This document shows positions 40,743 through 61,900 of a DNA stretch of 64,000 nt, in pieces. The position numbers and the translations under genes are program-made. The notes below the pieces were generated by a model that worked only from the letters and a program-made list of their open reading frames with translations, was not told the origin of the DNA and did no database searches. The DNA comes from Trichoplax adhaerens (Eukaryota > Animalia > Placozoa). Each line of letters opens with the position of its first letter. Position 1 is the stretch's first letter. The stretch is from NCBI RefSeq assembly GCF_000150275.1, contig NW_002060947.1, positions 2,903,740-2,967,739 of the forward strand, written 5' to 3'.

Positions 40743-42718
40743 CGTCCTGTGATGATTATTAATTAATTATATTATCAAGCTTATCCTCTCCAGCCAAACG
40801 AAGCCTTCCTGGCAATCCGTAAAACAACTCACCACCGGATACACGTTATTATCATACCGTAGGCTCATACACAGTACGGTACTTTGCACATTTTACTTAC
40901 TCATGAGTTAATACTGCCTCACTCGATTACAGTAGGTGTCCGCAGGTCTGGTCCAGTGTTGTTTGGATTCATGACCTCTAATGTATTCATGTTAAAAATA
41001 ATTAAAAATAAAATTAAAAATAAATTAAATTAAAATAATTAAAATGAATCTAAAACATTTCACCACGTTTCATAAAATACCAATACAGGGTTAGGCCACC
41101 TAAAAATGATTCGATTTGCAATTACAGTGCTGCATAATATTTCGACAAGTCCCTGCTCTAGTCTAGTCCACAAAACGGACGAATTTCAGGCCATTTTTAC
41201 CATTCACTACAGTGTAGACTGAGAGATTAAATGTACATGCAGTATGTAGTAGGTAAAAGGTAAAACACCACTGGTCTATCATTTTACCAGCCTAGCTTCT
41301 CAAATGATATTACACGGTCCACCTACTATAAGTGCTGTCATTTGAAGATATTTCAGTGAATAAAATATAATTAATCTAAGACGTCAGGTAGAGCAAATCA
41401 TCGTTTATGTTCTTACTAATGTCCATAAGGAGATTCCTAAGCTATTACTCAATGATTGCTAAGCACGATACAAAGCCAAAGTATAGCTTCTGCAAATTAT
41501 CATAAAGAAAAGTTTCAACGATTGCCTTAATGCAATGCTATACAGACGCAAATATTATGCGATAGCATATCACTGAAGGCGTTGCACTCTACTCATTGAT
41601 TAATTTAGCGACCATATTAATTTTGCTATAATTACTATGTTTTGATAACGTTCTGAATAATTTAGGCCTGAACTTCAGGGTATTTGCTGTATGTAAAGTC
41701 GGGATAATGTCGAAGGTTTATAGAAAATGGTACAGTAGCGTACTGTAATTAAAGGAAACAAGAAAAAATTGATGGCTGCAATTCCCATTGATCCTAGGTT
41801 TTCTTTCACCATATCTTTATGGATCCTAAGCATTTAACAGTGTTGAACAACACTAGTACTTACAGTCATGGATTTATGATACTCCAGTTTACTGTACACA
41901 TCAGCTACATCAGCTTATATCGACTGCTAGAAATTTCTAGTGGTCCATGATACAATAGTATGGCTAAAAGTGTATCATGTGCATTCCAAACCGTACTGCT
42001 GGACTTTATGACTGCTCTTAGTACCGTAATATAAGTTAGCACTCGATATTTGATTGTTTGGTGCATTGAGATTGTACCTTGATTGACGCTTTTCGATAAA
42101 GACGCAATTTTGTCAGTTATATTATGCTATGCGCGTATTATACAGTTTTCTAGACATATCCTGCACGTCTTTTACTATATACTAACGGCATAAAATTTAG
42201 TTTAGAAAGTATATTGGATCCTCCGTCACAAGTGATCGATTTAAGGGCGACTGAAATGGTTAAAAGCAGCACTGCTCCTTCACCATTTTGCGTAGATTAA
42301 ATGAAAGATATTTGAAAGTAAAACGCCGTAATTCATTGTTATGAGAGTGGGTGCAATCTAGAACTTTCGTAAATATTTTTTAGGATATAGTATAAGTAAT
42401 ACTGCAACCGTATCAAATTTCGATATCGCCTCGTTTATTCATTAATTATATATTAACTATCATGTTTTTGTATCATCTATATACTTGCTTTTAATAAATG
42501 AATGCTGAAATAGAAGAAAAATTTCAAATATGCTATCCATAATTCTTTTGCTAATTAATTGAAAACAATTGGTGTAGTTTGAAAAAGAGTATATCCTTAT
42601 GAGATTAACTTTTTCAATATAACGTGGGCTTACGAATATGTATGCATTTACTATTCCTATATGAGAAATTGACAATTGTTTTTGTCATCGTTGCAATCTA
42701 ATTCCATTTCATTATCCT

Positions 42719-42738
42719 GTACATGTCTAAACATGTTT
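42719..42738. promoter_or_regulatory. Candidate p53-family response element (two half-sites, zero spacer)
   Basis: GTACATGTCT-AAACATGTTT matches RRRCWWGYYY x2 at 19/20 positions, with CATG cores in both halves. Confidence 0.5.
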
Positions 42739-43675
42739 CCAGAACTGCATTTGTTGGTAATTGATTAATTGTCATGCCAATATTGTACGATTTATAATAA
42801 TATCGAAGTTAATATCGAACGATATTTCGAACAGGATATACAAATAGCATATTAGTTAAAGTTATTAATGTATAATAAAACAGCTGTGGAAGATCCATAT
42901 AATACTAAGTAAAGGCATCCTACAAAATTGTAAAATAAATATCATATAGTAGATGATGCATAATTTCTTTAACCCTTAATCGATCAATCAAATTTACTTG
43001 CATTTATAGAAATCATCTGATAATATATCAATTTATTGCTGTAATATTGAATAAAGGCTTAGTTAGAAATCATAATATTCCCTAGAATCGAGAACGAGAT
43101 GAGTTTATTGGGTTATATTATGAATTTATTAATATTTCAGCTAAATGGTATGATACAAAGAGTGTAGTATGAATTATGAATTACGTGATACTGGTACACC
43201 AATCCTAATAACGTATAAGATTTAAAATTATCTACCATGCTCTAAATTTGAATACAGTGCATTTATTGGATGATGAGTGTTATTTTAAATACCTAGTTAT
43301 TTTACTCTAATACACGCTAAATTACGTTTGCTTCTGCAATAAAATTAAATATTCTATGAAGAATACAAACGTTAGGAGTACACTTATACCAAAGTAGAAG
43401 TAATTATTATCTATGACATTGATATATGGGTCAAGATAACTTTTTTGATATGATGAAACGGCTGTTATGCGCCAAGCCCATACTGTGCAGCACAGCAGTT
43501 ATGTATTATGAAATGATAAGTGATAATTGACTTTGATGACCAAATATTTTAGTTAGTAAAGGATTGAAATGAAAGGATTTTAGCATGATTCAGTGTTGAT
43601 AGCAGACTAAGAAATCATATTTCCTTATTAGATGATTGTAAGGTTCGCAGTCATGAAACCGTTATTAATCACAAT

Positions 43676-43915
43676 TTATAGATGATTTTCACCCAAAAAT
43701 AAGGCTACAAGGTATCTTCTTACAGCCTTTAGAATTACCATCGAATAGTTAATAACATAATAGTCATCGCCAATTCTTTGCAAATCTTTCGCAATTTTCT
43801 TCAATCGTATATTGTTGTCGATGTTTTCATGTGCTCCATCATCCACAGAATCGGTATAGTAAATATAAGACAGTCTGAAAATATCTCTCAATAGCAAGAG
43901 TTTATAACCGTGCAT
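43676..43915 (-). CDS. Candidate BH3-only pro-apoptotic protein (BIM-like), 79 aa or the last exon of a longer protein
   Basis: BH3 motif IAKDLQRIGDDY (43795-43760) versus BIM IAQELRRIGDEF. C-terminal MVILKAVRRYLVALF versus the BIM tail MVILRLLRYIVRLVW. The ATG follows directly after an acceptor, cttctttttag|G. Confidence 0.72.
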   Translation of the reverse strand: MHGYKLLLLRDIFRLSYIYYTDSVDDGAHENIDNNIRLKKIAKDLQRIGDDYYVINYSMVILKAVRRYLVALFLGENHL

Positions 43916-46900
43916 CCTAAAAAGAAGCTTCGTAATGGTATAGCCTTAATATATTACATAATCAATTTAAATTATTCTAAGAGCAAATACTACAACAATA
44001 TTGCAAATATATCTCTCGGTTAGATAGAAAAACTCTGAACTAATTCAAGTTGAGCCGTCTAAATATTGTTTGCTAGCAACTTGAATAAAAACAGAAGCTT
44101 TCTAGCTATGGCACTTAGTCGAATACACATTTAAACTGAAGAGGACCGTATAATATTCATACTCCACAGATTGTATGTTGGAAAGTAAATAAATATTCAT
44201 AGAATAGTCCTCTCAATTTGTCGAAGGCTTTTTGTTACCGCCTACCGGTAGTTGGTAGTTACAAATGAAAAGATGTGATAGATAAATTATACCCCATTTT
44301 AACTGCGAGAGCTCTTCAAATGGTTTACGACAAATGAAAAATGATTGATCTCTACGTATTATAGGTTAGTGAATTAGACTACAGTATTACTCAATCAGTT
44401 AACTGATAGTATTCCCGGTTCATTGTTGGCTAATATCCTATAGATCAACAATTCATTCTCGGCGGAAGTCAAGCCAAATGCGTGGGGTATTGAATATGAA
44501 TAGCGCTCGCTTTAGTTCTTTTCCGAAAGGGTGGATCTAAATACCTATCGTAGTAAATTAATCTGTACATATCGCCGGAATAGAACTTTATTTTGCAATT
44601 ACCGTAAAGCGTGCGTGTTTTTCAATTTTTGTGCGCTTAATTGAAAGATATAGGGACAATAATTGTTTAGTACTAGCGGTGTATCATTTTTAAATAGGCA
44701 CTAATGTAAGAATGAACACTGTATTACATTTTTCATCAAAGTTTACTTTCTATCTTAAGCATTGAAATGATACCACAGTCAATCCAAGCAAGTGCTTAGT
44801 AAAATTGTCCTTAAACAAACCGTTATATGAACTCGCTTTCTTTATCAACATACTTAAAATCGCTCAAAATAGAATCTCCTTATTGAATCCTTTCTTTTGC
44901 CGAAAACAGGGTTATTAATATCATTTAATTTTAACATCTTAGAATCACGATAAAGTAAGCTATAGTCACCATCATCATTCTATGGCTTGTTATTTATGTT
45001 CTGGCTTTACACATAACAGATGCTGAAGTTGATGGGGAAATTGAAGAGAAGATATCCGGAATTTAAACACGTTAATAAAATAGAAAAACAATCGGCATTA
45101 CATTGTTATTGACAAATAAGTTAAATATAGCATAGCGAACAATACCATAATGAAGATATTTCACATGGTTGTGTTAAATATGGTCGTTACCGTATCACTT
45201 TCGGCCATCGCATAATTGTTACATCATTCATAGATTACGTTATTTTTGGTATAAAAAATGAATTTCCGTTATTTAAAGTAAATTGATTATTTTCAGTCTC
45301 TTCGAACAGAAAAGGTGATATTGACATTGCTATGTAAGGGCTAGCAATGCTCTGATGTTGCTTACGTTGAGTTAGAGTTAAAATAGTAAAGTAAGAACAC
45401 ATGTACTGTATATGTATGGTAAAGTACGCGAAGTATAACGGGCGAGGGACCTGCTAGCATACTAATAAGAGTGACGTCTTGATGATTTTATGGAGGCCAC
45501 GAAATAATACAAAAAATGCAACTTAGTCCATTATTAAAGAATGTTTTTGATATTACTCTAGTAACCTGCTATGTTACATTGGCAATAGCTATTAAATTGG
45601 ATATAAATAACCAATTATCTGACGATATACAAAAGCTTCTTCAAAGGCTATGTAGTTTTCTATCTTACTTTATTACTTATCTATCAAATTATGTGATTGC
45701 TGTATTTACAACAATTATATAATATACGCTACTTTAAAAATTCAAAGTTTAACTCTTAAAAGCGAGCGATATGTCACGATTTAAATAACACAGATATGAG
45801 CATATACTGAGTGTAAAAATCAGCTAATATTATTGGAAATCTCATTCTCATAGTCGTCAATTAATGGCAACTTTCACACCAAAGCAGCAATCTTTTATGG
45901 GTTGTATTTCGACTGTTACAGTATTTGTTTTAAGAATAAATTTGATAGGTTTAAGACCATTAATTGCGCTCAATAATATCAGCTACGTGATAGCAGTAGA
46001 GTGCATACCCGCAATTTGTGGCTTCCAAATATACGCAAATATAGCATAACAAACTTATCATGGACTAATTAGTGCCAAATATTGATACTGGATTAGACTA
46101 AGCACCGCAGTATGTACACTTGTACAGTAGGCTTCTAGAATTGAATATAGTTAGGAATTCCTCACCTAGAGAATCTTTCGAATCTTTCTTAATGACTCAC
46201 ATCTGCAATTTTTAATCATAGTATGTACAGTATTTTAGCTGTATCATTTATTGTTTATCTAGTATCTGATATTTGAACTAGTTACAGTCATGGAACTACT
46301 GTACACTGTACAGTAGTATGTCAAAAATACTGGGTACGATCGGTAACTTTGTGAAGATAAACTGTGGGGTACATTCTGTATATCCGCAGTGTAAAATCCA
46401 AAGCAAAATATGGAACTGGTAGCAGGCTACATTATGAACGTTGCTGCAAATGTAACTAGATGGGAATAGATATTCTCTATCATTCATTTGTCCGACCCGC
46501 CTACAATTATTCATTGTCTGTGTTCAATAACTATAGCTCACCCAAGTAAAGTAACTGCGCATACTTTACGCATTAAATATGCATTTATTGATATCTCGTT
46601 GATATCATGCAACGCACAAAAGTCAAAGAAGAAGTAAAAGATATTAAAATGAAGGTTAGATTATGAAAATTGCTTATAATAATCTCCTATCATAAGATTT
46701 TTAACAGATATACACAGATTCCATATTATTCAATGTTACATTATATTTCTACTATTTATCCAAGTCAAGCTTATTGTACTTTTTATCAGTAGAATAAACA
46801 TGTTTATCTATCAAAAGGTTCTTAGTTTATGTTTACTGCTACAATAGTACTATTTTAAGGTCATAATTTTGATACAAATGCATCTTGCTAGTATATATAT

Positions 46901-46953
46901 ACAATAATTCAAACTACATCTTAGTTTAACTGACGTAATATTACTTAGGATAA

Positions 46954-49900
46954 CTATAACGATTTCATCAAATTAAGTTTAGACTGCAATAGTGGCCCTC
47001 CTTTAATTGGTGATGAGACTCCAGCAGTAGTTAATTTTAGATTTTCCTGTACGAAATTACGCCTTCTATGGATAAGTGAATGACTAGTTGCATGGACAGT
47101 GCTATGGCCTGAAGGAGGGACATAGTCTTTGGGTAAGCCTTTAACTGCATAAGTCCATTCCATATTCTTCGTCTATAATGGAATAGAAATATAGCAAAAT
47201 ATAACTACATTTTAAACATCTACATGCTTAACAAAAAATTATTATAAAAGATAAGCAAACCTGAACAATTAATTTAGCACGATGTGTTCTGCCGTAAGTG
47301 GAAGGTTTATAGGTAATTGTAAACGCTGTTCCTTGAGTTCCTAAAGGCAGTAGTTCCCCATACTTTGGAAATACTGTGAAAGCAGCATCAGAACGATGCT
47401 CGAAATACGCCTCAAATGGAACTGGAAATCTGTAGTAAATTTTATATTTGGTTATTTAAGGTGTATAATCATAATCAGCGTATTGTAATTTCTGTTCGGT
47501 TACAGTTAATTGTTTGGATATCCAACATTGTAACTTACTTTTCTTGGCTATGCAAATGGAATGTAATAACAGATTCTTTATTTAATCCAACAGATTCAAT
47601 TGATATGGTATCATCAACTTGTGGTGATGATGCTCGAAATTTTAAAGGAAATTTCCAAACTCCACGTTTCTTAGCAGTAACCACTAATTGGACCGTTGCG
47701 CTGGAGTACGATCATAGTTAATAAAGTATTTTAACGTTAGATTAGAAAGACATAAGATAAATAAACGAAATTAAGAAATGATGTAAACGTAGTAATACGA
47801 ACTTGAATGGCTTGAAAGGTGCAAAAATTAAATGAAATACCAATCGGATTGAATTTGTCGAAGAATTAATAATTTTTCGGATCAAACTTAGACCTACAGC
47901 TTGTTCAATTAAAGTCTTATTAGCATCATCTGCATAAACAAGCCTATATTCGAAGTCTTCATTTAACATGATCTCATCATCCATTAAAAATGAATCTTGA
48001 GGTGACGGTGTTATTGCTCTAGTCAACAAAGTATGGTTTTTCTCTTCAGTTGCTGTTTCTGCTTGATGATTTAAGGTAATCTCTAGTCTCTCTTCTATGC
48101 GACTGCGTGATTGGCAATGTACAACGGCACCGTTTGAATCAACGGTAACTAATTCCGGTATTCCAAATATTGGAATGTGCCACTGTAAATGATCAAACGG
48201 ATTGCCTGCATCATCAACAAATGGCACATCTTCTTGCCTCTTAACATTAATACAGCAGGTTGTTTCAAAGAATGTCATATTCTCAGGTGCAAAGGTAAAG
48301 GGTATTTCCAGAGTTCCTTTAGCTTGTAAGGTAATATTATGAGTATGCTTCAACAGCAACCGAAATACGGGCTGTTGTACCGCAGGATTATTGCTATTAT
48401 CTTTGTCAATCAGCTCCACAGTAACACGCAGTGGCTCATTAAATGGGTTATGAAATGGTAAAATTAGCGAAGCGCTAGCTCCAAGTAACGAACTGACATA
48501 AACTGGATCGACTTTAGATGGGACTAAACCATAGCCTTTAACACTAAATCTCCAGTCACCAATCTAAGTTGTCAAATTGTAAAATTCATGAACGCAAATT
48601 TTATCAATACCCAGATGGCTAGATTGTTACATTGAAATATCATGCTACTAATAAATGTAAATGGATAAATAATTGTACAAATTTTTCTTATTTCGCTCTC
48701 ATACCTCGGTACTCTTGAAATTGATGACGGCCATCTGATTACATAAGCCAAGCATGGAAGGTACAAATTCTAATGGCACTTCGATAGAAGACTGAGCATC
48801 TAAAGTAAACTGAAATTTGTAATGTATTGATTAGGATATCTATAACATTTTAATTAATAATATTACAGATTGATAATTATACCATACTTCCTCGTTTAAA
48901 GGAATATCAAGGCGGAAAGAGCTAGTATTCGAGCACTGTGGAGTAAGATGTAAAATTTCATCGGTTGGGTTTTGCAGTTGTATCATTTGCTTGCAAGACC
49001 TAAATACGGGTATTTCCAAGTATATATAAAGACAATTAAGATAGCACAACTTGCTGACAGATTATTTTTCGATCAATAGAAATTAAAATTAAAATGGTTA
49101 CTAATTCTTACTTTCCAAGTTCACATTTCATATCTTGCAATTGCGTCGGCTCAGGAGGCAATGCATTCAATTTCAATTCATACCAAAATTCTCCTATAAT
49201 TTCATTCTGGAATAGAATGCTATAAAACGCATTGATACCCAATTAATTTATTAATATAGATACCGATAATGACTTTGAGCGGGTTATATAAAAATCTTAC
49301 TTAAAATCGTCATTGTTAAGTTTATAAACTGTAGCTCTATTACCTTGCACTGAACGTTCCAATTATGGTTGGTGAGTATATGACTCGAAATTTAGTTGAT
49401 TCATTTGATTGAAGGCGCAAATTATCGGCAGCACTTAAACACTGTGAATGAAGGATTTGGACTTGAAAATTGATGTCGCTATCGGTAGGGTTTGCAATTC
49501 CAATTTCTATCGCGCAGGAACTTTGTACAGCACAAGAAACATCAAAAACTTTTTCTGGTGGCGGGGGATCAGCGTTAATTTCTACGGCATACCATACTTT
49601 ATGACTACCAATGGGCATATCCATTAGTGTATTTAATGCTAGATCATCTGCTTTATTTGGTAGGTATGCTAATTTGGTTTCATCATTATAAGATGATAAT
49701 CCATGATTTTCACTGCCCATGTCGCTGTTTTCATCACTATTTTCATTAGATTCTTGTTGGTCTATTGCATAAGCTTTACCCCTAAGAAATTGAAAGAGTT
49801 TTATTGCCCTTAATCCTTATGAAGTAAATTCAACAAACTTCATTATTTAAATTACACGCATCGTTAATTCATTCGAACAATTTTATATTGCGATAGTGAT

Positions 49901-52900
49901 TCTATTTAGCCTGTGAATATAGCGTAATTAGAATTAATTAACTTACATTGGAAATATTTCTGATTCTTCAGCGATGAAAGATATTATCCCTTTATGCTGT
50001 CCTCGACGCAACGGAGTGACAATGAATTCGTAATCAGCATCTTTACCAGGACCAACAGAAACTTTACCTGGTCCAGTTACACAAGCTATGTCGGTAACAA
50101 CCTGCATAGATAATTGTTTGACATAATCTTCCTTCTAAAGTTATCGAATAATAATGTAAATATACTATTTCAGACTCCTATACCTTGAATGTTACCCATT
50201 TCCTTGAAACGTTGGGGATGCGTATCACATGCGTTAGACTAATACCATATCATCAAAAACAAATAATTTAGACGTAAAACAAGTAATAATCATAATTATC
50301 TTAGCTTTACTAATGCAGTGCTATAATTAAATAAGGATATTACCTTTTCCTAGCTTGACATTTTAAGACGATCTCGTCCAAAGCAAGAGGTTTTTCACCA
50401 AATCCTTTCAGATTGAAGATATGAGTATTGCCATCTTTTTGATTGCTTAAAACCAATCGGCCCTATATTGAGTCAAAATTTAACGGAAATTAGCCAATAA
50501 AATTAAAATGAAAATAAATATAGCGAATTTTGTATATAATATAATGTGTTATTCATACCGTAGTAGTATATTCATGAGTTGGCCTGAAATATACTGGAAA
50601 ATAGGTTGTCATGAATGATTTAGCTACTAAATGAGAAGGTCCAACGAAACCTTCTCCAGATAATTTTGCTTCGAGATACCAATCCTCGATTGTATAATTT
50701 GCCTGTGGAAAATAGTTGTTAACAGTATCGATTAGTACAAACATCATTATTTTAAATAATAGTGCGTTATATTCGAAAATAACAATTTAATAGTAATGTT
50801 TGGTATTTATAACTTACAATAGGAATCTCCTGTTTAATTGATTGATATGCTGGGCTGTGAAATTCCAGATCCGCAGCTGCAACCGTAGCGGTTACGGTAC
50901 ACTCAACTTTTAAGACTCGAATATCATACTTCGAGAGTAAGATTACTTGGCAAGGGTAGTGGCCAGCACCATGAGGCTCGAACTTGATAGGTACGCTTAA
51001 TTTATCTATTTTAATTAAATAAGCAACGCTGTACCATTAGTCATACTAATTGCTAATCAAGGTAGAATTGGTCTAAAGAATTCACATATTTGCAACTGCC
51101 AAATATACTCTACTCATACTTTCTTATGATAAGCTTCAGTTATGAAGGACATTTCTTAATCGATGGTGAGATTAAGAGATATGTATTCATTTATGAATGT
51201 AAATATAATCCAGGTAGAAGTATGTTTATAGTCTTACGTATAAATTTCAATTTTAACTATCACTAATTTTATCATCTATGCTTATATATCTGGCGCATAG
51301 AGATCAACGAAAAAGTTTTCTTAGGTAAGTACTTGAGACTTACTTTTATCATGAGGTGAAGATTGGGCCAAAATAGGAATAGTAGTAGGAGTTGAGAAGT
51401 ACTTTGAACTGACTCGAACCTGATATTCACTTTCCGGTAATTCCTCATATCCTGCTGGAGCATTTTTAAGCTTCATGGCGGCTACACCTGCTAAAACTGT
51501 ACAGCTCCGTAGAGTTTTTGTTAATTTGCGCCTCTCTATTTCATCCTGAGACATTTGCTGTTTAGCAGCAATAGCTAGTGCTTGCTCACGTACTGTATTA
51601 ACTATAGGCAGCTTAATAACTTCATTTAGTTTTTGATCTGCGTTACATCTCCAATAAATAATAGTAGGATCCCCACCAAATAAGCCTTGACCGCGCCCTG
51701 CAGCCGCTGCACTACTTATACGGACACTTCCAGGTATGCTAACAAATGGTACGACAGAAGGTAAAGGTAAAGTCGCCATAGTTCGGATTAAATATAAAAA
51801 TTCGCCAACAACGTTATTCGCAAGTAAAACGGAACAAGTATGAAGACCTAGATGGAAAGGTAAGAATTCTATTTCGATTGTTGTTGATTCGTTGGGGTTA
51901 AGGTAAATTTGTTTGCTATTAGACCAGAAGGCTTGCAGCTGTTCATGTTTAGACGATTTTAATTCTGCTGGACTTGTATCTACCCGATCAGTCATTAAAC
52001 GAGAATGATGTGATGGTCCCGCTTGATCGCAAGATTCAATTAGCATTAGACGAAATAAAGCTCCTTTATCGAATGGGTTGCTGATAGTTAAAGTTAGAGG
52101 CTTAACTTCAAAGCAGGGAGATTCCGTCGACAAGGTGTTTATCGGTTTAATGATATCAATTACCGCATTCATCTTAAAGACTAATGTTGATGCTTGTGAA
52201 CTACCCAAACGTCGTCCAACCAAGACTAGACTTGCTTGAGCAGCGCGTAGAAATCGACTCTTAAAGGCTACTTCTAGATCGACCTTTTTATGTGGGGCAA
52301 TTTGGATATGATTAGAATGAACTGAAAAATCTTGAGCATCCTGACCAACAATATTAATGCTGTAATGTAATGGCTTAGTGCTAGGGTTTTGCAAGCGGAT
52401 TTGCCTAAGAATCGTGCTATGCAAAGCTCCTTGAAATTCTATGGTACTCTTTGATTGATAATGAGGTAATCGATCAAATAGGAAAGTAGTTAACATCAGT
52501 AATGAAACTGGATTGGGATTCATAATGTCGCTGGCTTGGATATCATATTCGAGACCAAGGCTTTGAATTGCGTTAATAATATGGATCGCATTGTGTAAGC
52601 ATTGCTGTGTATTATTGGGATTAGTGTATAACATTTTTATGTAAGTAACATTTAAAAATGGCGCGTAAGCACCTAAAACACAAGCTAAAACTAGTCCATC
52701 CATTAAATCATCACTAAAATTGACAACCCATCTTGCTGCAGGAGTTTGATCTGGCCAAATTTCATGTCTTTGCTTTTCGAAATGATAATTTAACCAATCC
52801 AATAGGATACGTTCCGACATATTGTAGATATTGCTTGCTAAAGGATCTGGGTTAATAGCGTCCAATCGTTTAGTACCGTCAATTAATGCAATCTTTTTAT

Positions 52901-55900
52901 ATCGGCGTTGCGTGACACGATTTAAGATGAAAACTTTATGCAATTGTAGTAAAATGTGCGTCCAAGAACGTATCGAAATTCGCTTAAACTGCTCTAAATT
53001 GTAAGAATATTGGCCAGTTTGTTTGATCCAACTCTCATAACATTGGGGTTCCAACAAATATTCGGCTCGAATTGAGCCAACCATACCACCTTGTGTTCTT
53101 AAAAACGTCAAAAGGGTCGAATATTGCCAATGTAGATGTGCTGCTTTATCCATTAAATTAGATGGTAGAGGAGAATTAATTGGAATACCAGGCACATGTC
53201 TACCACATAAATGATGAATTAAATCGAAAATGGTTTTAGATTCTCGCTTTCCATTACTACTTGATTCTAGTCGACCTGCACGTGTAACGCTGCTACTCCG
53301 TGCAATAGATATATAACACGATTTAGGCACAATTGTTGGTGATATTCCGCCAGGCCAACCATGAAATGAGTACCACCTTTCTACAGCTTTAACTGCTTTA
53401 GCTAAATAGCTATGACTGGTATCAGTGGCGGCATGTCTATCACGCCGATCGATTTCGTCTTCATCCTCATCATCGCCCTGGTTGTCAATAATGTTAAGAT
53501 TGCTCAATGTGATTTCGGATTCAATACCTTCATCACCTTCAGTAAATGGTGTAATATTGTCGAATATTGAACTAGTATTATCAATAGATTGTTCGTGATC
53601 TGATAATGCTTCACATTTTACTAAAATTGGTTCAACAAAAGGTAAAGGGGAATCTTGCTGATTTCGGATTATATGATGGTCTTTATTTTTGGATGCGATG
53701 AACGGATAAGCAGTCAGTAGGCAATTTTCACCAGTCACGGCAACATTTAAGGTATAGCTAAACAGCAGAAAGGAATTACGTTTATTCGCGCGTTAGATTT
53801 ACTATAGTTGTTAGTAACAGTAGTACGCTTGTAAAACGTATTTCTATTCTATTAGATTAAAGTTGCTAAACTTTTAAAACTGTTTATTACTACCTTACCT
53901 ATTTCCAAAGGAATCCTTAAATTGTATCGGTATAATAGTTGAAACTGGCTTGCTCGTTTGAAATTTAATGATGAAAGGAAGAGAAGAATTATCACATTCG
54001 GCTTTATTTTGAACATGCCCCTGGATCAATCTACCCTTCGGAAATTCAACGCATAAAACCTGAGCTAGACTACCGTCTTCCAATTCACATTCTGGTATAA
54101 AACATTCAATTTCTGTATCCCTGCAAAGCATTAATGCGATCTATTAAAAATGCGATAATTTTATTTTGGTTTTAGCTATCGTCCATATTTACCTATTAAA
54201 TCCACTGGCAATTAGAGCACACGAAGCTACCACTTCAGTCTCAATAGGAGCTGGGCTTAACCAGACTTCTCTAGGTTCAAACTCTATAACTGGTGCTCTT
54301 AGCTCTCCATGTAGCATTAATTCACGCAATGCCTGCCGTTTGTTCCTAACGCAAACCGGTAGCGAAGCGGAATAGATACCAGGTCGAGCTAATGATTATA
54401 AATTATTGTAAATCAAAAGTGTAAGGTCATTAACGTTGGCAAGAGCTAGAACTTGATCTATAATGAGTAAGCTAACTTAAATCTATGATAAATAAATTTT
54501 ACCTGGATTAAAAACAATTCCAAGCAGGCTACTTTCCCCTGGTTTTAGATTTCCATTTTCGAACTGATTACCATCTTTATCCAAGAATTGGAACGCTTCT
54601 AACTGAGGATTGGTAGCCGTATCAATATCCAAGAACCACTCTAATTCATCATCAGTACAGTTGGCGACCATACAGCCCTGAAAGGTAGCAATACATACTA
54701 TTATCTATCATTCTGATTTTAAGACCTAACGTAGATTCTAGGTTAACATTTGCAGATTTTAAAGGACATCTATTCCTATCTAGTAGGATTTAAGAGTATT
54801 ATTATTAGCTGAAATTGATAAGTTTGTGTTATTATTAGCTAGTACCTGTAGAGGTTTATCCATTTGTTCTTCACTAGTATATTCTGCACTTAGTAAAAAC
54901 TCTACGTGAGTGTGAGATAATTGCAAAAGAGGTCGTAAAGCAGTTGCCAGAACATGACGCTTCGGAGTGGCTAACTGAGTTAGGGTGGTAGGAGTATCAA
55001 TACGTGGATAACTATATTTCGATGTAGTTGGCGTTGGTGGTAGTGGAGATTGGGGTGGAGAAGGGGGATTTATTTCGTTAATTGTAACCGGGAGATAAAA
55101 ATCGTATGATGCAACCTAAACGAGATTATTTTAAAAGTGTCATTCTTAAAAGATCTAAATTTCAGTACTATAATTGCGTATTGAATTGACGGCTGAATTT
55201 ACATGCTACATTACTTCTTGTTTCTAGTAAATTATATTTAAGATCGATTAGCTATTTATTCTAATATGTCTACCTCTGATGGATAAAATTGTAGTATATA
55301 GCTGATGACTTCATTGCCGTTCATACTTATCGTATATAAATTTTGATTCCCATCCTCTCTAATCAATTTCTCTAGGAAGGCAAATAGAAATGGATATTAA
55401 TATTAATGCAAGGAGTAAATACTTGAAGATAATTATGGACTAGATAGTATTAACTTAACACTACAATGATAGTAAGTCAGAAAAGTAGACACTCTCTCTT
55501 TGATAAGTATGAGAACCTTAGTAAGCGTACCTCCAGATTCAATTATAAATAATGACAAACACTAACAAGATAAATGATAAGAAAATAATGAAATTACCTG
55601 GATTAGTTTGTGAATCGCACCGAATTTTAAAGTCTCGAAATCTACTCAAGTCGATTGCAACTTTAACCGGTGTATTTGTCTAAAGAAGAAATTTCCAAGG
55701 AGAATTTGTTTGTACGCGTATAAATGATATTAATTGCAAAATTTATAATTCGTGAAGTTGAGATCAAATGAATATTTATCTCATCTTTTACCTTGTTGAC
55801 CAACTTAAATGATTCTTCACCAAAAGATCCACAGTGGATACCACCAAAATAGAATTGTTGCTTTGGGAATTATTAGTAAATAGCAATGAAGAATAAGACA

Positions 55901-58900
55901 TATCCACCACGAATAATAATACAATCAAGCATCTATGCTAACCCCGAATGTTGACTATCATCCTCATACAGCATAACTGCATTGGGGTGTGCAACTCTTT
56001 AGCAATTTATAAGTTAACGTACTTTATCAATGTCAACGCGGGGTTCTTCAACACGTCCTCCAACTCGGAGTGAAATGGTTTTCCATCCGCGAATCTTAAC
56101 ATGTATGCTTGTATCGAATTTCTGAACCACTGTCGGAGTAAAGTCCACCTGAGAAAAGAAAAAAATTTACAATGTGCTTGCATAATTTACTGCTGTAGAT
56201 TTATTTTCTGAATACGTGTAGAAGACGGATATTTTGCAATTAAACTTAACTTTCTATAGATGAGGCTCAGATGCTTTTAGAAGCATGATATAATGCTGTT
56301 AAACTCCTCTGTCAGCTAGTCAATATTATTTCTACTTTATATCCTGATTAACATGTGGGCAAGGGAGGCACCAATACTTGTACCTCCCTGTATCATGTGT
56401 TCAGGTATCACTGATTATACATTGGTAGTCATATCTCATATCTGTATCACTTCTACGTTAATATGAGAATAATTTAGAAGTAACCACATTTCTTTACGTT
56501 AGGATTTACAGAATACTAGATTACTTCCTGACTATACGAGTATTGCTTAATTATAATGCTATACATTATGATGTACTGTAACATACTGATATCAATTACA
56601 TATTTTGTTGAGCTCATAATTACTAGGAGAATACAACCACTATACTAATTGGAGACTACAGATTATAATTATCAAGTGCTCATTTGGATGTACAAAAAGT
56701 AGATCACACTTCAATTTTGTTAATGGGAAACGGTAAATGCTGTTGTAGTACTGAACCCTATTACCGACCTAAAAGCATTTTTCTCTTAAATTGACTGGAT
56801 GTTTCGTTATCTCATGTTAATGCTATACGTACATTATGACATATCTATTAGAAGCTAATGTACCTTAATTTCTGTATATCCTCCTACTGCAACTAATCCA
56901 GATATTGGTGTGATAGTCATGCCTTGGAAAGGATTTGAGTCTACCACCTGTTACAAAATTGTCAAAGTGATAATATTTTTTAGAATAGAATAGTAATTTA
57001 ACATGGGCAATATATTTTAGGCATGCAAAATAATGTATTTTACAAATTAATTTTTAAAAATTTATGGTACTATACTTCAAAATGAGCATGATGCTGTCCG
57101 GTATTTTGCAGTAGAACAATTTTAGTGGTAGTTAAGTGAAGAGGTACCGAACCAAATAAAAGCCTTCTTTCTACAAAAGCGCACTGAGCTTGCCCAAACT
57201 GCAATAAATAGATATAAGGTACATATGTAATCGTATATCCTTTACTAAAATCGAAATGGAACCGTAATCTCGATATAATAATAACTAATTAATCAATACT
57301 TGCCTCACAAGTGCATCTTAGTAATGAATCTGCACCACCTTTAACGGATAGCAAAAACTCTACTTCAGTCGAGGATCTGTATGTTGGATGACAGATAACT
57401 TCACATGCAAGGGTGGAAAATGCTTCAACATAGCCTAGTGAACATGAAACTCAGATTATTGCTTAAGTAAAATGAAAGTAAGTGACTTTAATACTGAATG
57501 CAAAAATATAATATTGAATACCAGTGGCGGGGCTGATGTAGTAAGTTGGTTCTCCGCCTCCTGAGTTGTTTAAAGTCCATTTAAATTGTGCTGGATAATT
57601 GCGCGGATTAGTCACATAGACTAATTCTCGAATACCTTTATAAAAAATATCACCAATACATAAATGTTTTAATAGCTTCTAAAGCTAATGGCAGTTCGAT
57701 TCTCAATTAATTGTAAACCTGCATGTGCTGGCTGTCCAAATTTGGGTTTCAATACAACTTTATTAGTGGACAATTGTAAATCGACACTAACGACATTGGC
57801 GAATAGCACAAGATGTTTCATATGCTTGCGATTAATGTAATAGGTAATATTACTAGAAGAAAATTGAAATGCACTTAAGACAGGGTTGATAAGATTTAAG
57901 CATTTCGAGTGCAAATAATTTACTGATATAATATATGATCGAAATATATCCATTTAAAATATGTACAATATAGGCATAGCATACCGATGATAGCTTCCAA
58001 GTTGATTTGCCTCAAAAATACATTCAAATTGCGCTACACATTTAGGAGGTATAACTTGAGATGCAGGAAATGATTGCAACATTTCAGGGCAGTTATCGAA
58101 CTATACAAATGGTCGAAATACAATTAACTATTGTGCGAATGTCGTTAATTAAGAAAGCGAGTTTGTGGACTAGTACATAGTAAGCACATAATACATTTGT
58201 TAATTCACTTACTTCTAAAGAGAACAGAATATGGTTATCCAGATTATTTGCAACCCGGAGATATTTAGAATTAGTGGATTGTTGACAAACTTCTCCATAA
58301 TCTAACGTTCCTGGAGCTAAATTATAGTTAAACACAAATAAATAATATAAAATAGTTAATGCCGTGGATGTGACATATATACATATATCGCACTGTCTGG
58401 CTATGTTGTGATTCAGTAATGTTTATCATAGCAATGACATTGAGCATCATTCGGTAATTAGAAAGACGTGTTATCCTATGCTCTACTTATAATTAATTTT
58501 AAAATTAAATTTTAAAATGAACGGGAAAAAATTTATTTATGTAGTGGTTATGGAATTGATTGATTACTATCATGTCAATTCCTTACCTAATTTAATCAAA
58601 TGTATTTGAGCAGGCATTAAAGTCCTTGAACAATCGCTGATTTCTTCTTGTGTCACAGGTATAGTTCCCAAGCCTAGCTTTAGGGCCTATAATGTTATAT
58701 TAAGTTTAGTTGATCATAACATCTCATTAAGATCAACATTTATTGACTGCTTTGTTCACTCATTATAAGTACCTCTTCGTTGCCCGTCATATTATGGCAA
58801 TAATCGACAATTTTATTACTTAAGACCATATGATTTTTTTTCGGTTTTTGATTTGAGGCTGGCGTAATACCAGTAATAAAAAAGAAATTTTCGTAATTTG

Positions 58901-61900
58901 ATTTATTGTATCGAAATTGATTAGAGCATTTAGACTAATATATAAAAACATACTTTTAACATCATCATACAGTTCTTTCAATGAAGCTGTAGGAGGAACA
59001 AGCCCTGCTCCTGGCTTTATTCCCAAATCTATATCACTATCAATTTTCTGGTACATTCTAATAAGAAAACATTTTTTAATTGCGTTAGCGAGGCATAAAT
59101 ATTCGATCTTATAGATCTTTAAGTGGAAAATTCAAGTATATAATCATACTGTCTAAGAAAATCGATTAACTCGGGAGCCTAATTTATGGATTAAGGATTA
59201 CAGTGATAGCTAAAAAATTTATTAGCAAATTTCTTAAAATTAGAAAGATTACTTGTCTCGTTGGCGACTTTTTCTGGTATCCCTGAGATCATCAATGTAT
59301 TTTCTATATTTGATGTTATTGATATCTCGCTTTTGGGTTTCTTCTTTGCTTAGTGCATAATCAGGATCAATATAAGTATAGCGATCTGTCCGTGTATACT
59401 TTGATCTAAGTAATCGGACAAAAAGTTGATTAGATTAATATCAAACAACTTTTCTCAATCCAAATATTAGTGATATCGTAAGGTAACGACGTAACTCGCA
59501 TAACTACTTGAAGACTTGACAAAAAAAATTAATCTTAATAACTTTAGAATTGAAAATAAAATAAAAATCTTGTACCTAACGCGGGACCTGGGATCTGCCG
59601 GTCTCACACTCCCTGGTAAATCATTCGGATTCGCAAGTTGGACATCATCTCTGGATCTATTCTTGCTGGCTACTTTACTTTGACTTGAATCTATTTGGAT
59701 ATGACCGTTACTAGTCTTTCCTTGCTGATCACGATTTAGTGCAATACAGTTTACTTCAACATGGATTGGAACAGAATGAATGATTTTGCCATGATTATCG
59801 ATAACGTTAAGGTTAATATTATTTTTATACAATCCAAGTTGCTGAGGGCGAGCAGATATAATTATACTTTGTGATTGTAATGGTCGAAGTTTTCCTTCGC
59901 CTGGATTGGTATAGAAATGAGCAATTTTGCTGAATTTAAATTTTACAGCTAATTCCTTGGATTCATTGGTAATCGTGAATAAAGCATCTGTTCTTTCACT
60001 GACTGTACAACTTCCAAAATCATACTGCATGTCAGGCTTGATAGATAATAGTACAGGTAAGGCACAACCTGTGATGGCGACTTCAATGCCTAAAAAAACA
60101 AGCACGTAGTCATCATAAGAAATAATTAATGTAGCACAGATTTTCGCTGCTATTACGTGTGATTTTAACTGGAATGGAAAGTTACATGGCGTTATAATGC
60201 TAACTTTCTAGATTTAATGTTTTAATCAGGATATCAAATTACCTTTTTGGCCATCCTGAAGTAGCTTATTTTCTTGCTCGCTATTGATTAAATTATTTTG
60301 CACCAATGTAAATTGCATGTAGATAGCGTAATCGCGCCTTGGGGGAGATTGCTGCTTATTTTTGAAGCCAATTGCTGAGTAATGATATTCAGGTTTGAAA
60401 TGGAAATCAATTGCCAGTTTCTCGTAAGGCTTCAAAATTCCTTGATTAGGGGTTGTTGTAATTAGAGATAAGATATCATTTGTACGACCATCATGATGAG
60501 CTTTTTCCGTTAGAGCTTGGGCAGTTGTTAGGCTAAGATCAGAGTCCTAATATAATAAATATGTAAAGTTGATATGCTGTTGATGTAATTACTATAAATA
60601 GAAGATTATACTACGTAAACAAATCATATTATCGCAAAAATGAAATTGTCAAGCCTTAAGCCAAATAAATTGGTGTTAATTTTTAATTCATTAAAATTAT
60701 CATTATTCGATCAAACAACTAAAATTTCTATCTTACAATTGATAGAATTAAAGTGTAGGAGTACTTACAACTTCTTGACCCAATTGGTCTTCTAGCAGAA
60801 TTGCAACAAATTGGATTTCATCAGGACTATTATTAAATAGGATTCCTTGTTTTTGTTGCTGAGTACCGTAATAAGTTGGTCCAAACTCGACACATCGCAG
60901 AGGTTGAGTGTCATCGGGATTAAGCAACATTAATTGACGTCTCATAACCTTGCCTTTAATTGACAATTTACTTTCGGGACGACTTTCTAACATAACACTA
61001 TCGAATGATGGTTGTTAGAATAGAGATTCAAATATGATAAGAAGAGCGAATATGCTACTAATATAATAATATAGCCCTAAATAGTCTATTTACTTATGTG
61101 CTGCAAATCAATAAGTTTAACTAGTTATGCTAAATAACAAGGGTTTGGCCGATAAATTGTTTTAGTTCATTGCGCTATAAATTAAACAGAGCTATTTTCA
61201 AACTATTCAAGGTTAATATACCTGGCATATTCTTCGAATTCGGTAGCTGTATCCGCGATAAAGTTAACCTATCAATGCAAATGTATGATAGTTCAATACA
61301 TATTTACACTTTCGTATTCAATACAAAATTATCGCCTGATAGCAGTAAGATTTCGTCCTACATGATTTACCCTCAATGCTAGTTAAAGACATTACCTCAA
61401 TATCTAATTCGCTATAGGGTTCAACATTGCCTGAACTTGGTTGAATTGTTATTGACTTTGAACCAGCGTAAGATATCTCGAAATGCCCATTCCTTGAACC
61501 TTCATTAATTATTTTAACGCGTTTTTTAAGAATTCTTCCATCAGCAGGTGCAGTACCAAAATCTACGGTTCCTTCAATATGAAGTAATGGTACGGGACAA
61601 ATCCTATAGGATAGCACATTAATAATAATGATACGATACTCTTGTCATATGTATAGATAAATTCTTAAACAAATAAAAGAAATTCAAGTTGCTTGTAGTG
61701 TGGATTGAATCTAATTTTATAGCAAGAGTCATTATTCCTAGTTACCATTAGCTGTATGTCTGATAACTTCCGAGCTAATATTGTTTGTATCGCCGTTACT
61801 CTGACTTACCCTAAAAGCGGTATTTCAATGACATCATCATCTGCTATAAGTAATATGCGATCCTTATAATGATCATCGGCGGCCGGACAATATTCAATCG

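Follow-up and report, generated by a model that had tools for sequence, protein, structure and literature searches.

A conserved 79-residue microprotein as a candidate BH3-only apoptosis initiator in Trichoplax adhaerens

We analysed a window of 64,000 nt from the genome of the placozoan Trichoplax adhaerens (contig NW_002060947.1, positions 2,903,740 to 2,967,739), in which an original prediction, made from the letters alone, had proposed a BIM-like BH3-only (Bcl-2 homology 3 only) initiator of apoptosis in a short open reading frame (ORF). Translation of window positions 43676–43915 on the minus strand reproduced this ORF, a complete coding sequence with its ATG at 43915–43913 and its TAA stop codon at 43678–43676. 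It encodes a microprotein of 79 residues that contains the four BH3 hydrophobic residues, A42 and the Gly-Asp pair, as predicted. An in-frame stop codon is located a few codons 5′ of the ATG.

From its N-terminus, the product begins with a conserved hydrophobic and aromatic segment (residues 1–20, 43856–43915, minus strand as for all segments; M..YK-LLLL-RD-..-RLSY-.-YY) with ten invariant alignment columns, which includes an R-x-S-Y site and may have a regulatory role. An acidic, poorly conserved linker with few invariant columns follows (residues 21–35, 43811–43855), and the acidic stretch that had been noted ahead of the motif is present as TDSVDDGAHENIDNN. The BH3 core IAKDLQRIGDDY (I41-A-K-D-L45-Q-R-I48-G49-D50-D-Y52, 43760–43795) matches the BH3 pattern with its hydrophobic positions h1–h4, the small residue and the Gly-Asp pair. 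After the core stands MVILKAVRRYLVALF, and the C-terminus of the ORF is MVILKAVRRYLVALFLGENHL; residues 59–75 (MVILKAVRRYLVALFLG, 43691–43741) form a hydrophobic, basic tail that is a putative membrane-binding helix or tail anchor. AlphaFold2, supplied with a three-sequence alignment of the ORF and the two orthologues described below, placed helices at residues 3–26 and 32–78 with a break at 27–31 (mean predicted local distance difference test (pLDDT) score 66, predicted template modelling (pTM) score 0.34). The conserved N-terminal segment sits within the first helix at low confidence, the lowest 10-residue block covers residues 21–30 (mean pLDDT 54), and the helix over the BH3 region has a pLDDT of 60–78. 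We read this model as indicating helical propensity, with no globular fold. In line with the earlier statement that no BH1 or BH2 is visible, Pfam gave no domain match, including PF00452, at E-values up to 10 for the ORF or either orthologue, and thus no BH1/BH2 was detected.

A phmmer search of 1.84 billion cluster representatives returned the 76-residue protein P0001 as the sole match (E = 1.1e-14, 50% identity) and no cnidarian sequence. The alignment spans Met1 to Gly75 and contains one gap, of one codon and in frame. The gene for P0001 lies on a Logan contig of 11 kb (L003), with CFAP47 exons (Pfam CFAP47, CH and Ig_CFAP47) upstream on the same strand. The arrangement in the window is identical: the small gene is located ∼2.6 kb downstream of a spliced CFAP47-type gene on the same strand (46547–60105, minus strand; CH, CFAP47 and Ig_CFAP47 domains in the orthologous contig), and the large CFAP47 exons of the window and of L003 share 84% identity. 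Searching with P0001 revealed a second 76-residue orthologue, P0002, on a 981-bp contig (L004) of a European Nucleotide Archive (ENA) metagenome assembly; it shares 70% identity with P0001 and 44% with the window ORF. The start Met is common to all three orthologues and their stops are at most four codons apart, with GAA in Trichoplax where the other two end in TAA, giving four extra residues. A profile search of 5.8 billion proteins found nothing beyond the two orthologues, a word-indexed protein search and a JGI metagenome scan with the ORF gave no match, and a profile search of the Trichoplax genome itself showed a single copy and no paralogue. The gene is fast-evolving and, judged by these searches, has so far been found only in placozoan-type genomes.

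Using the Nei-Gojobori method, we obtained ratios of nonsynonymous to synonymous divergence (dN/dS) of 0.31 and 0.32 for the window ORF against the two orthologues, at dS values of 1.07 and 1.31, and a ratio of 0.57 for P0001 against P0002, the closer pair. As the adjoining CFAP47 exon had a dS of 1.33 (dN/dS 0.068), the silent divergence of the small ORF is about that found elsewhere and its protein is moderately constrained. Third codon positions were enriched in differences (20/18/35 and 27/20/39 over the three positions; p = 0.03 and 0.04), each of the alternative frames contains 5–9 stops in every species, and random substitution simulated at the observed density left the frame open in 2.0%, 1.3% and 7% of cases. 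Both the ORF and its motif are kept in related genomes, with a conserved BH3 core and a dN/dS of ∼0.3, as the original prediction would have it. Given the three orthologues, the synteny, the dN/dS, the open frame and the in-frame indel, it is very probable that the ORF is a real, selectively maintained coding sequence. The opposite view, that this is an untranslated conserved element such as an enhancer or a long non-coding RNA whose frame and motif are accidental, would fit with the adjoining non-coding blocks, which are conserved equally or more strongly, with the minimal RNA evidence and with the absence of the ORF from the protein collection searched. We consider it highly improbable, since three species at a dS of ∼1 have retained the open frame (neutral retention probability ∼0.02 times 0.07), the indel, the third-position excess and the dN/dS are those of a coding sequence, and DNA conservation falls right past the stop codon.

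To define the limits of the gene, read contigs were examined over 42001–48000. Three transcriptome-like runs confirmed the CFAP47 introns at 47173–47260, 47430–47538 and 47701–47802 (GT..AG, minus strand), and the CFAP47 contigs ended at 46547 in one assembly, with a T-run corresponding to a minus-strand poly(A), and at ∼46651 in two others, ruling out the ORF as a tail exon of CFAP47. The only true coverage in 42001–46300 (4.3 kb) of X9, the sole declared RNA-seq run, was a contig of 159 nt with a depth of 4 at 43722–43877 (no strand assigned), wholly inside the ORF. It differs from the window at 5 positions in 156 nt, including T>C at 43758 and 43808, translated as Y53C and I36M. This contig is weak but positive evidence of transcription; in the RNA-seq check suggested with the original prediction, it was the single sign of expression, and a splice joint at 43917 was not seen. 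Coverage in another run, X4, extends into introns and over most of the interval, so that this run behaves like DNA.

The region directly upstream of the ATG bears on where the coding sequence begins. A pyrimidine tract followed by AG, one base before the ATG (43917–43926, minus strand), is a possible 3′ splice site of an intron in the 5′ untranslated region (UTR), and this order of T-rich tract, AG, one base and ATG (ctttttAG before the ORF ATG) is conserved in three species. The same acceptor-like sequence, together with the lack of a splice joint or transcript end in the read contigs, would also suit a longer protein of which this ORF forms only the final coding exon and C-terminal tail, joined at AG 43917. 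We regard this as quite unlikely: Met1 is invariant and stands right after the AG in three species, in each of the other two assemblies gene callers placed a separate gene of 76 residues, and the CFAP47 transcripts end well upstream, as described above. By reading, the upstream conserved blocks either contain stops in every frame or show substitutions of a non-coding kind and indels whose lengths are not divisible by three, and they were rejected as coding exons; an earlier-proposed candidate exon at 44351–44293 lies in a poorly conserved, indel-rich stretch and was rejected too. Because the upstream conserved blocks appear non-coding, the invariant Met after the conserved T-tract-AG-N is best read as the start codon. 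The gene likely consists of one coding exon, probably preceded by a spliced 5′ UTR.

The BH3 motif was compared with that of Bim and searched for across the genome. In an ungapped BLOSUM62 comparison, the Bim BH3 12-mer (PMC10063584) scored 42 out of 59 against the ORF, while the next-best score among the 127,930 six-frame positions of the window was 28 and none of 1,000,000 composition-preserving shuffles of the ORF reached 42. The two orthologues scored 38 and 34. Genome-wide searches covered the 105.63-Mb assembly (1414 contigs, ∼31% G+C) and used a strict DNA-level pattern, [T-middle codon]-[A/G]-x-x-[L/F]-x-x-[T-middle codon]-G-D-[D/E]-Y. With Tyr at h4, this pattern occurred at one site genome-wide, the present ORF, and at none in a reversed-pattern control; a T-middle codon in place of Tyr at the last position gave five sites versus three in the control. 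The whole architecture, in which the motif has a Met upstream of it and is followed by a hydrophobic 15-mer whose end is at most eight codons from the stop, was found at 0.6% of random six-frame positions.

Among the three orthologues, the BH3 core is the best-conserved segment of the protein, reading IARELQNIGDSY in P0001 and VARELQIIGDSY in P0002. A42, L45, Q46, I48, G49, D50 and Y52 do not vary, and h1 is I/I/V, so that all elements of a BH3 motif (hydrophobic residues at four spaced positions, a small one after h1, Leu at h2 and a small residue followed by Asp after h3) are present in the ORF and kept in both orthologues. The freely varying positions 47, 51 and 54 are spaced three to four residues apart on one helix face, which fits the exposed face of a groove-bound helix, and the helical hydrophobic moment of the protein peaks at residues 37–51. 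At the sequence level, this comparison demonstrates a conserved coding gene whose motif is canonical and under constraint. In the Atlas, unnamed small eukaryotic clusters ranked ahead of the named protein-language-model neighbours, of which those shown were PXT1, BMF, NOXA, BMF, BIM, BMF/PUMA and BIK at scores of 0.79–0.85. As they rest on the same motif, we treat these neighbours as leads only; all named ones are BH3-only names plus PXT1.

The likeness to Bim (BCL2L11) that gave rise to the original prediction holds for one part of the protein and not for the other. Both proteins share the BH3 core (IAQELRRIGDEF in Bim versus IAKDLQRIGDDY, 7 of 12 residues identical and the other positions similar), followed by an amphipathic hydrophobic C-terminal helix with basic residues on one face; in Bim, the C-terminal sequence is amphipathic with R130 and R134 on one face (Chi et al.). 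The Bim C-terminal 15-mer (PMC4695108), however, scored only 20 out of 74 against the ORF tail, a value reached by 4.4% of shuffles and at 39 six-frame positions of the window, and 12 and 11 against the orthologues, where MVIL is replaced by MAIL and VKIW. The specific Bim C-terminal sequence MVILRLLRYIVRLVW is found neither in the ORF nor in the orthologues. What is conserved is the physical design of the tail, a hydrophobic helix with spaced Lys/Arg, not a Bim-like sequence: mean Kyte-Doolittle hydropathy over 15 residues is 1.3–2.1 in the three orthologues, Lys or Arg recurs every 3–4 residues, and the last nine residues are fully hydrophobic. The argument that two BIM-like segments would be unlikely by chance thus fails at the second segment, whose likeness is at chance level in the ORF and lost in the orthologues, and we rejected the idea of a Bim-specific tail. 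The BIM-like BH3 core stands, as does the presence of a hydrophobic, basic C-terminal tail after it, without resemblance to the Bim membrane-targeting sequence.

Further differences from Bim were apparent. The Pfam models Bim_N (PF06773), Bclx_interact (PF08945) and BMF matched neither the ORF nor its orthologues, and a TQT dynein light chain motif, a feature of the long Bim isoforms, occurs in none of the three sequences. The ORF has 79 residues, compared to BimL, which is numbered to ∼140, and BimEL with a length near 200 residues; its BH3 and tail lie within one exon, and it has a conserved N-terminal segment for which Bim has none. The single match of PF08945 in the Trichoplax genome was a string, MIAESLYRYGDIKQ, at another locus (L002:1501–1572, minus strand, equal to G000:C1413:6722347–6722418; 15.3 bits, E = 2.7). 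It is unrelated and, standing in an open frame of 1331 residues, looks like a chance BH3-like string. Against the three orthologues, the Trichoplax Bak BH3 scored 30–37 and the Bim BH3 34–42, in keeping with a BH3 likeness that is real but not Bim-specific. Since none of the Bim_N, Bclx_interact and BMF models matched and the tail likeness is at chance, we do not file the gene as a Bim orthologue; from these sequences, orthology to Bim is not demonstrable, and the ORF is better described as a candidate BH3-only protein.

Other known systems offer further parallels. The Hydra vulgaris protein HyBH3-only-2, which has been called the evolutionarily earliest BH3-only protein so far identified, is likewise short and non-bilaterian, with BH3 as its only Bcl-2-family feature. 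Its core IGACLRAIGDDI is identical to IAKDLQRIGDDY at 6 of 12 positions, with the same h1–h4, Gly and Asp, but no homology is detectable outside the motif. Binding of HyBH3-only-2 to HyBcl-2-4 has been measured at 149 nM, and the Hydra protein is pro-apoptotic; for the ORF product both properties are predictions. trBak (trBcl-2L4), whose BH3 has been proposed as a BH3-only-like sensitiser, comes from the same organism and has the same presumed receptors as the ORF product. Its core IGRHLAQLGDSY shares 7 of 12 residues with that of P0001, IARELQNIGDSY, including the unusual Tyr at h4; it differs in being a multi-motif Bcl-2 fold with BH1 and BH2, whereas the ORF has no Bcl-2 domain and one third of its size. 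Hrk, Bik, Noxa and Puma resemble the predicted layout of the ORF product, short and largely unstructured or helical, with a BH3 and then a C-terminal segment for membrane targeting, as in Hrk and Bik, and NOXA, BIK and BMF/PUMA clusters are among its nearest named Atlas neighbours. The ORF is not a member of any of their sequence families.

Taken together, we lean towards a conserved microprotein gene that acts as a placozoan BH3-only initiator, and its sequence makes the ORF a strong candidate for the BH3-only apoptosis trigger of placozoans. A number of observations weigh against this. BH3-like motifs are degenerate and known for false positives (PMC9171138), no Pfam BH3-only family matches the ORF or its two orthologues, and the genome-wide PF08945 search missed the locus, its single match lying elsewhere. 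Sequence and profile searches of the PDB returned no Bcl-2-family peptide, only chance matches to a portal protein, SMC, enolase and xylanase. The AlphaFold2 model is of low confidence (pLDDT 66), and the tail contains 2–4 basic residues and is therefore not a classical transmembrane anchor. On the RNA side, two other transcriptome-like runs had no coverage at the ORF, and the read contigs showed neither a splice joint nor a transcript end there. Finally, the conservation of residues 1–20 is close to that of the BH3, and this segment is without counterpart in known BH3-only proteins, which could point to another function.

Several of these points would also be expected of a genuine conserved microprotein, perhaps membrane-associated, that keeps a BH3-like helix for a partner outside the Bcl-2 family. 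Its N-terminus, its lack of a BH3-only Pfam family and the degeneracy of such motifs all agree with a different partner, as do the chance BH3-like strings that we met in a phage portal protein and a TPR-like ORF, and Atlas scores that stay below 0.9. We regard this as possible, if a good deal less probable than a role in apoptosis. The strict 12-residue pattern has an estimated probability of the order of 1e-5 in a given 79-residue protein, based on amino-acid frequencies, and across a dS >1 its seven defining positions show either no change or a conservative replacement. The exposed, variable positions are arranged as groove binding would have them, the succession of motif, hydrophobic tail and stop is that of Hrk, Bik and Bim-type proteins, and among the named Atlas neighbours shown none other than PXT1 falls outside the BH3-only names.

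For a BH3-only initiator, presumed receptors exist in Trichoplax. Searching the whole genome with the Pfam Bcl-2 model identified four genes, which we analysed by their first-exon open frames. These frames contain the exact trBak and trBax BH3 peptides (Popgeorgiev et al. 2020), and one of the genes (L005) matches PDB 6YLD chain A with an E-value of 1.8e-95. These matches identify the genome as that of Trichoplax and confirm the probable placozoan origin given in the original prediction. The NWGR motif is kept in three of the four genes and reads SWRR in trBak; its Arg, the partner of the BH3 Asp, is conserved in all four. The open frames of all four genes stop shortly after the BH2 Trp, where an intron is read. 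The anti-apoptotic gene matching 6YLD and the trBak gene (L005 and L006; G000:C1388) are ∼20 kb apart on opposite strands. Published work has shown that the two recombinant anti-apoptotic proteins of Trichoplax bind human Bim BH3 (83 and 41 nM) and use the canonical groove to bind BH3 peptides of trBak and trBax, and that a Trichoplax Bcl-2 protein can be crystallised in complex with the trBak BH3 peptide (PMC7527217). Two studies found no BH3-only gene in Trichoplax (Popgeorgiev et al. 2020, Banjara et al. 2022; PMC7527217, PMC8998228), which agrees with what the original prediction had stated, and led to a model in which early animals ran mitochondrial permeabilisation by multi-motif Bcl-2 proteins alone, with trBak as a sensitiser (PMC7527217, PMC8998228).

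Set against this background, the candidate initiator would be a product of 76–79 residues with a conserved N-terminus, an acidic linker, an amphipathic BH3 helix and a hydrophobic, basic C-terminal helix, for which membrane targeting, groove binding and pro-death activity can be inferred. The tail would hold the microprotein on the mitochondrial outer membrane, where I41, L45, I48 and Y52 of the BH3 helix would enter the groove of the Trichoplax anti-apoptotic Bcl-2 proteins and D50 would pair with the Arg of the NWGR motif. Occupation of the groove would release trBax, activate it directly, or both, leading to permeabilisation of the outer membrane.

A second BH3-only-type candidate was observed elsewhere in the genome, as one of the further sites of the genome-wide BH3-pattern search. 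This ORF of 59 residues (G000:C1408:1790840–1791019, plus strand, equal to L012:561–740) has an acidic N-terminus, the BH3 core LATQLKNIGDEM and a 20-residue hydrophobic C-terminus just before the stop codon, which is overlapped by an AATAAA. Its likeness to the window gene is restricted to the 14-residue motif. Two ORFs with a complete architecture of BH3 and tail were thus observed in the genome versus ∼0.02–0.04 expected by chance, and this excess strengthens the view that Trichoplax has BH3-only genes. That placozoans possess at least two unrelated BH3-only microprotein genes, with the window gene a true descendant of the Bim/Bmf lineage, seems unlikely to us. If this were the case, Bim-type initiators with a C-terminal membrane- and Bax-binding helix would predate the split of placozoans, cnidarians and bilaterians, and would have arisen neither later nor from a Bak-like protein.

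Upstream of the small gene, several non-coding stretches are conserved. Nearest to the ORF is an interrupted inverted repeat of 72 nt (44027–44098, minus strand; ..TTCTG-TTTTT-ATTCAAGTTG .. CAACTTGAAT-TAGTT-CAGAG..), which is 70–90% identical in three species, has a variable 24-nt loop and, by reading, contains stops in all three frames. RNAalifold predicted 18 pairs; at two of them a change on one side retains G-U pairing, compensatory changes are absent, and Rfam gave no match in 43300–44700. The repeat could be an RNA hairpin in the 5′ UTR or a palindromic protein-binding site. Within a moderately conserved block further upstream, a perfect 10-bp palindrome, CTACCGGTAG (44242–44251, minus strand), is invariant in three species. 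It is followed by a conserved region at 44445–44619 (minus strand) with TTCCGG and ACTTCCGC motifs, which by reading are ETS/E2F-like; BLASTN aligned this region to L003 with 71% identity over 187 nt, and its core at 44444–44488, CCCACGCA.TT.GCTTGACTTCCGCCGAG..GAATTGTTGA, is 83–90% identical in three species. The region at 44445–44619 and the palindrome are probably the promoter or a first non-coding exon of the small gene. Two more blocks, of 34 and 66 nt (45096–45129 and 45228–45293, minus strand), lie in the stretch that separates the small gene from the 3′ end of CFAP47 and are 76–82% conserved between the window and L003. On the other side, ∼940 bp 3′ of the ORF stop, the sequence GTACATGTCTAAACATGTTT (42719–42738) differs by one mismatch from a spacerless double p53 half-site (RRRCWWGYYY twice), with CATG in both cores; p53-like sites with at most two mismatches number 4 in the window versus 1.5 expected.

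As far as our literature search shows, the microprotein is unreported as a BH3-only candidate, and the literature from 2021 on held no later report of a placozoan BH3-only gene. The locus therefore provides a concrete candidate for the missing placozoan BH3-only protein, conserved in three genomes, and reagents for testing it exist in the form of recombinant trBcl-2L1 and L2, an isothermal titration calorimetry (ITC) set-up and BMK double-knockout (DKO) cell assays. If the candidate proves true, the documented origin of BH3-only initiators would move back from cnidarians, the model of the ancestral apoptotic switch would have to be revised, and microprotein genes missed by annotation would be seen to hide components of core pathways.

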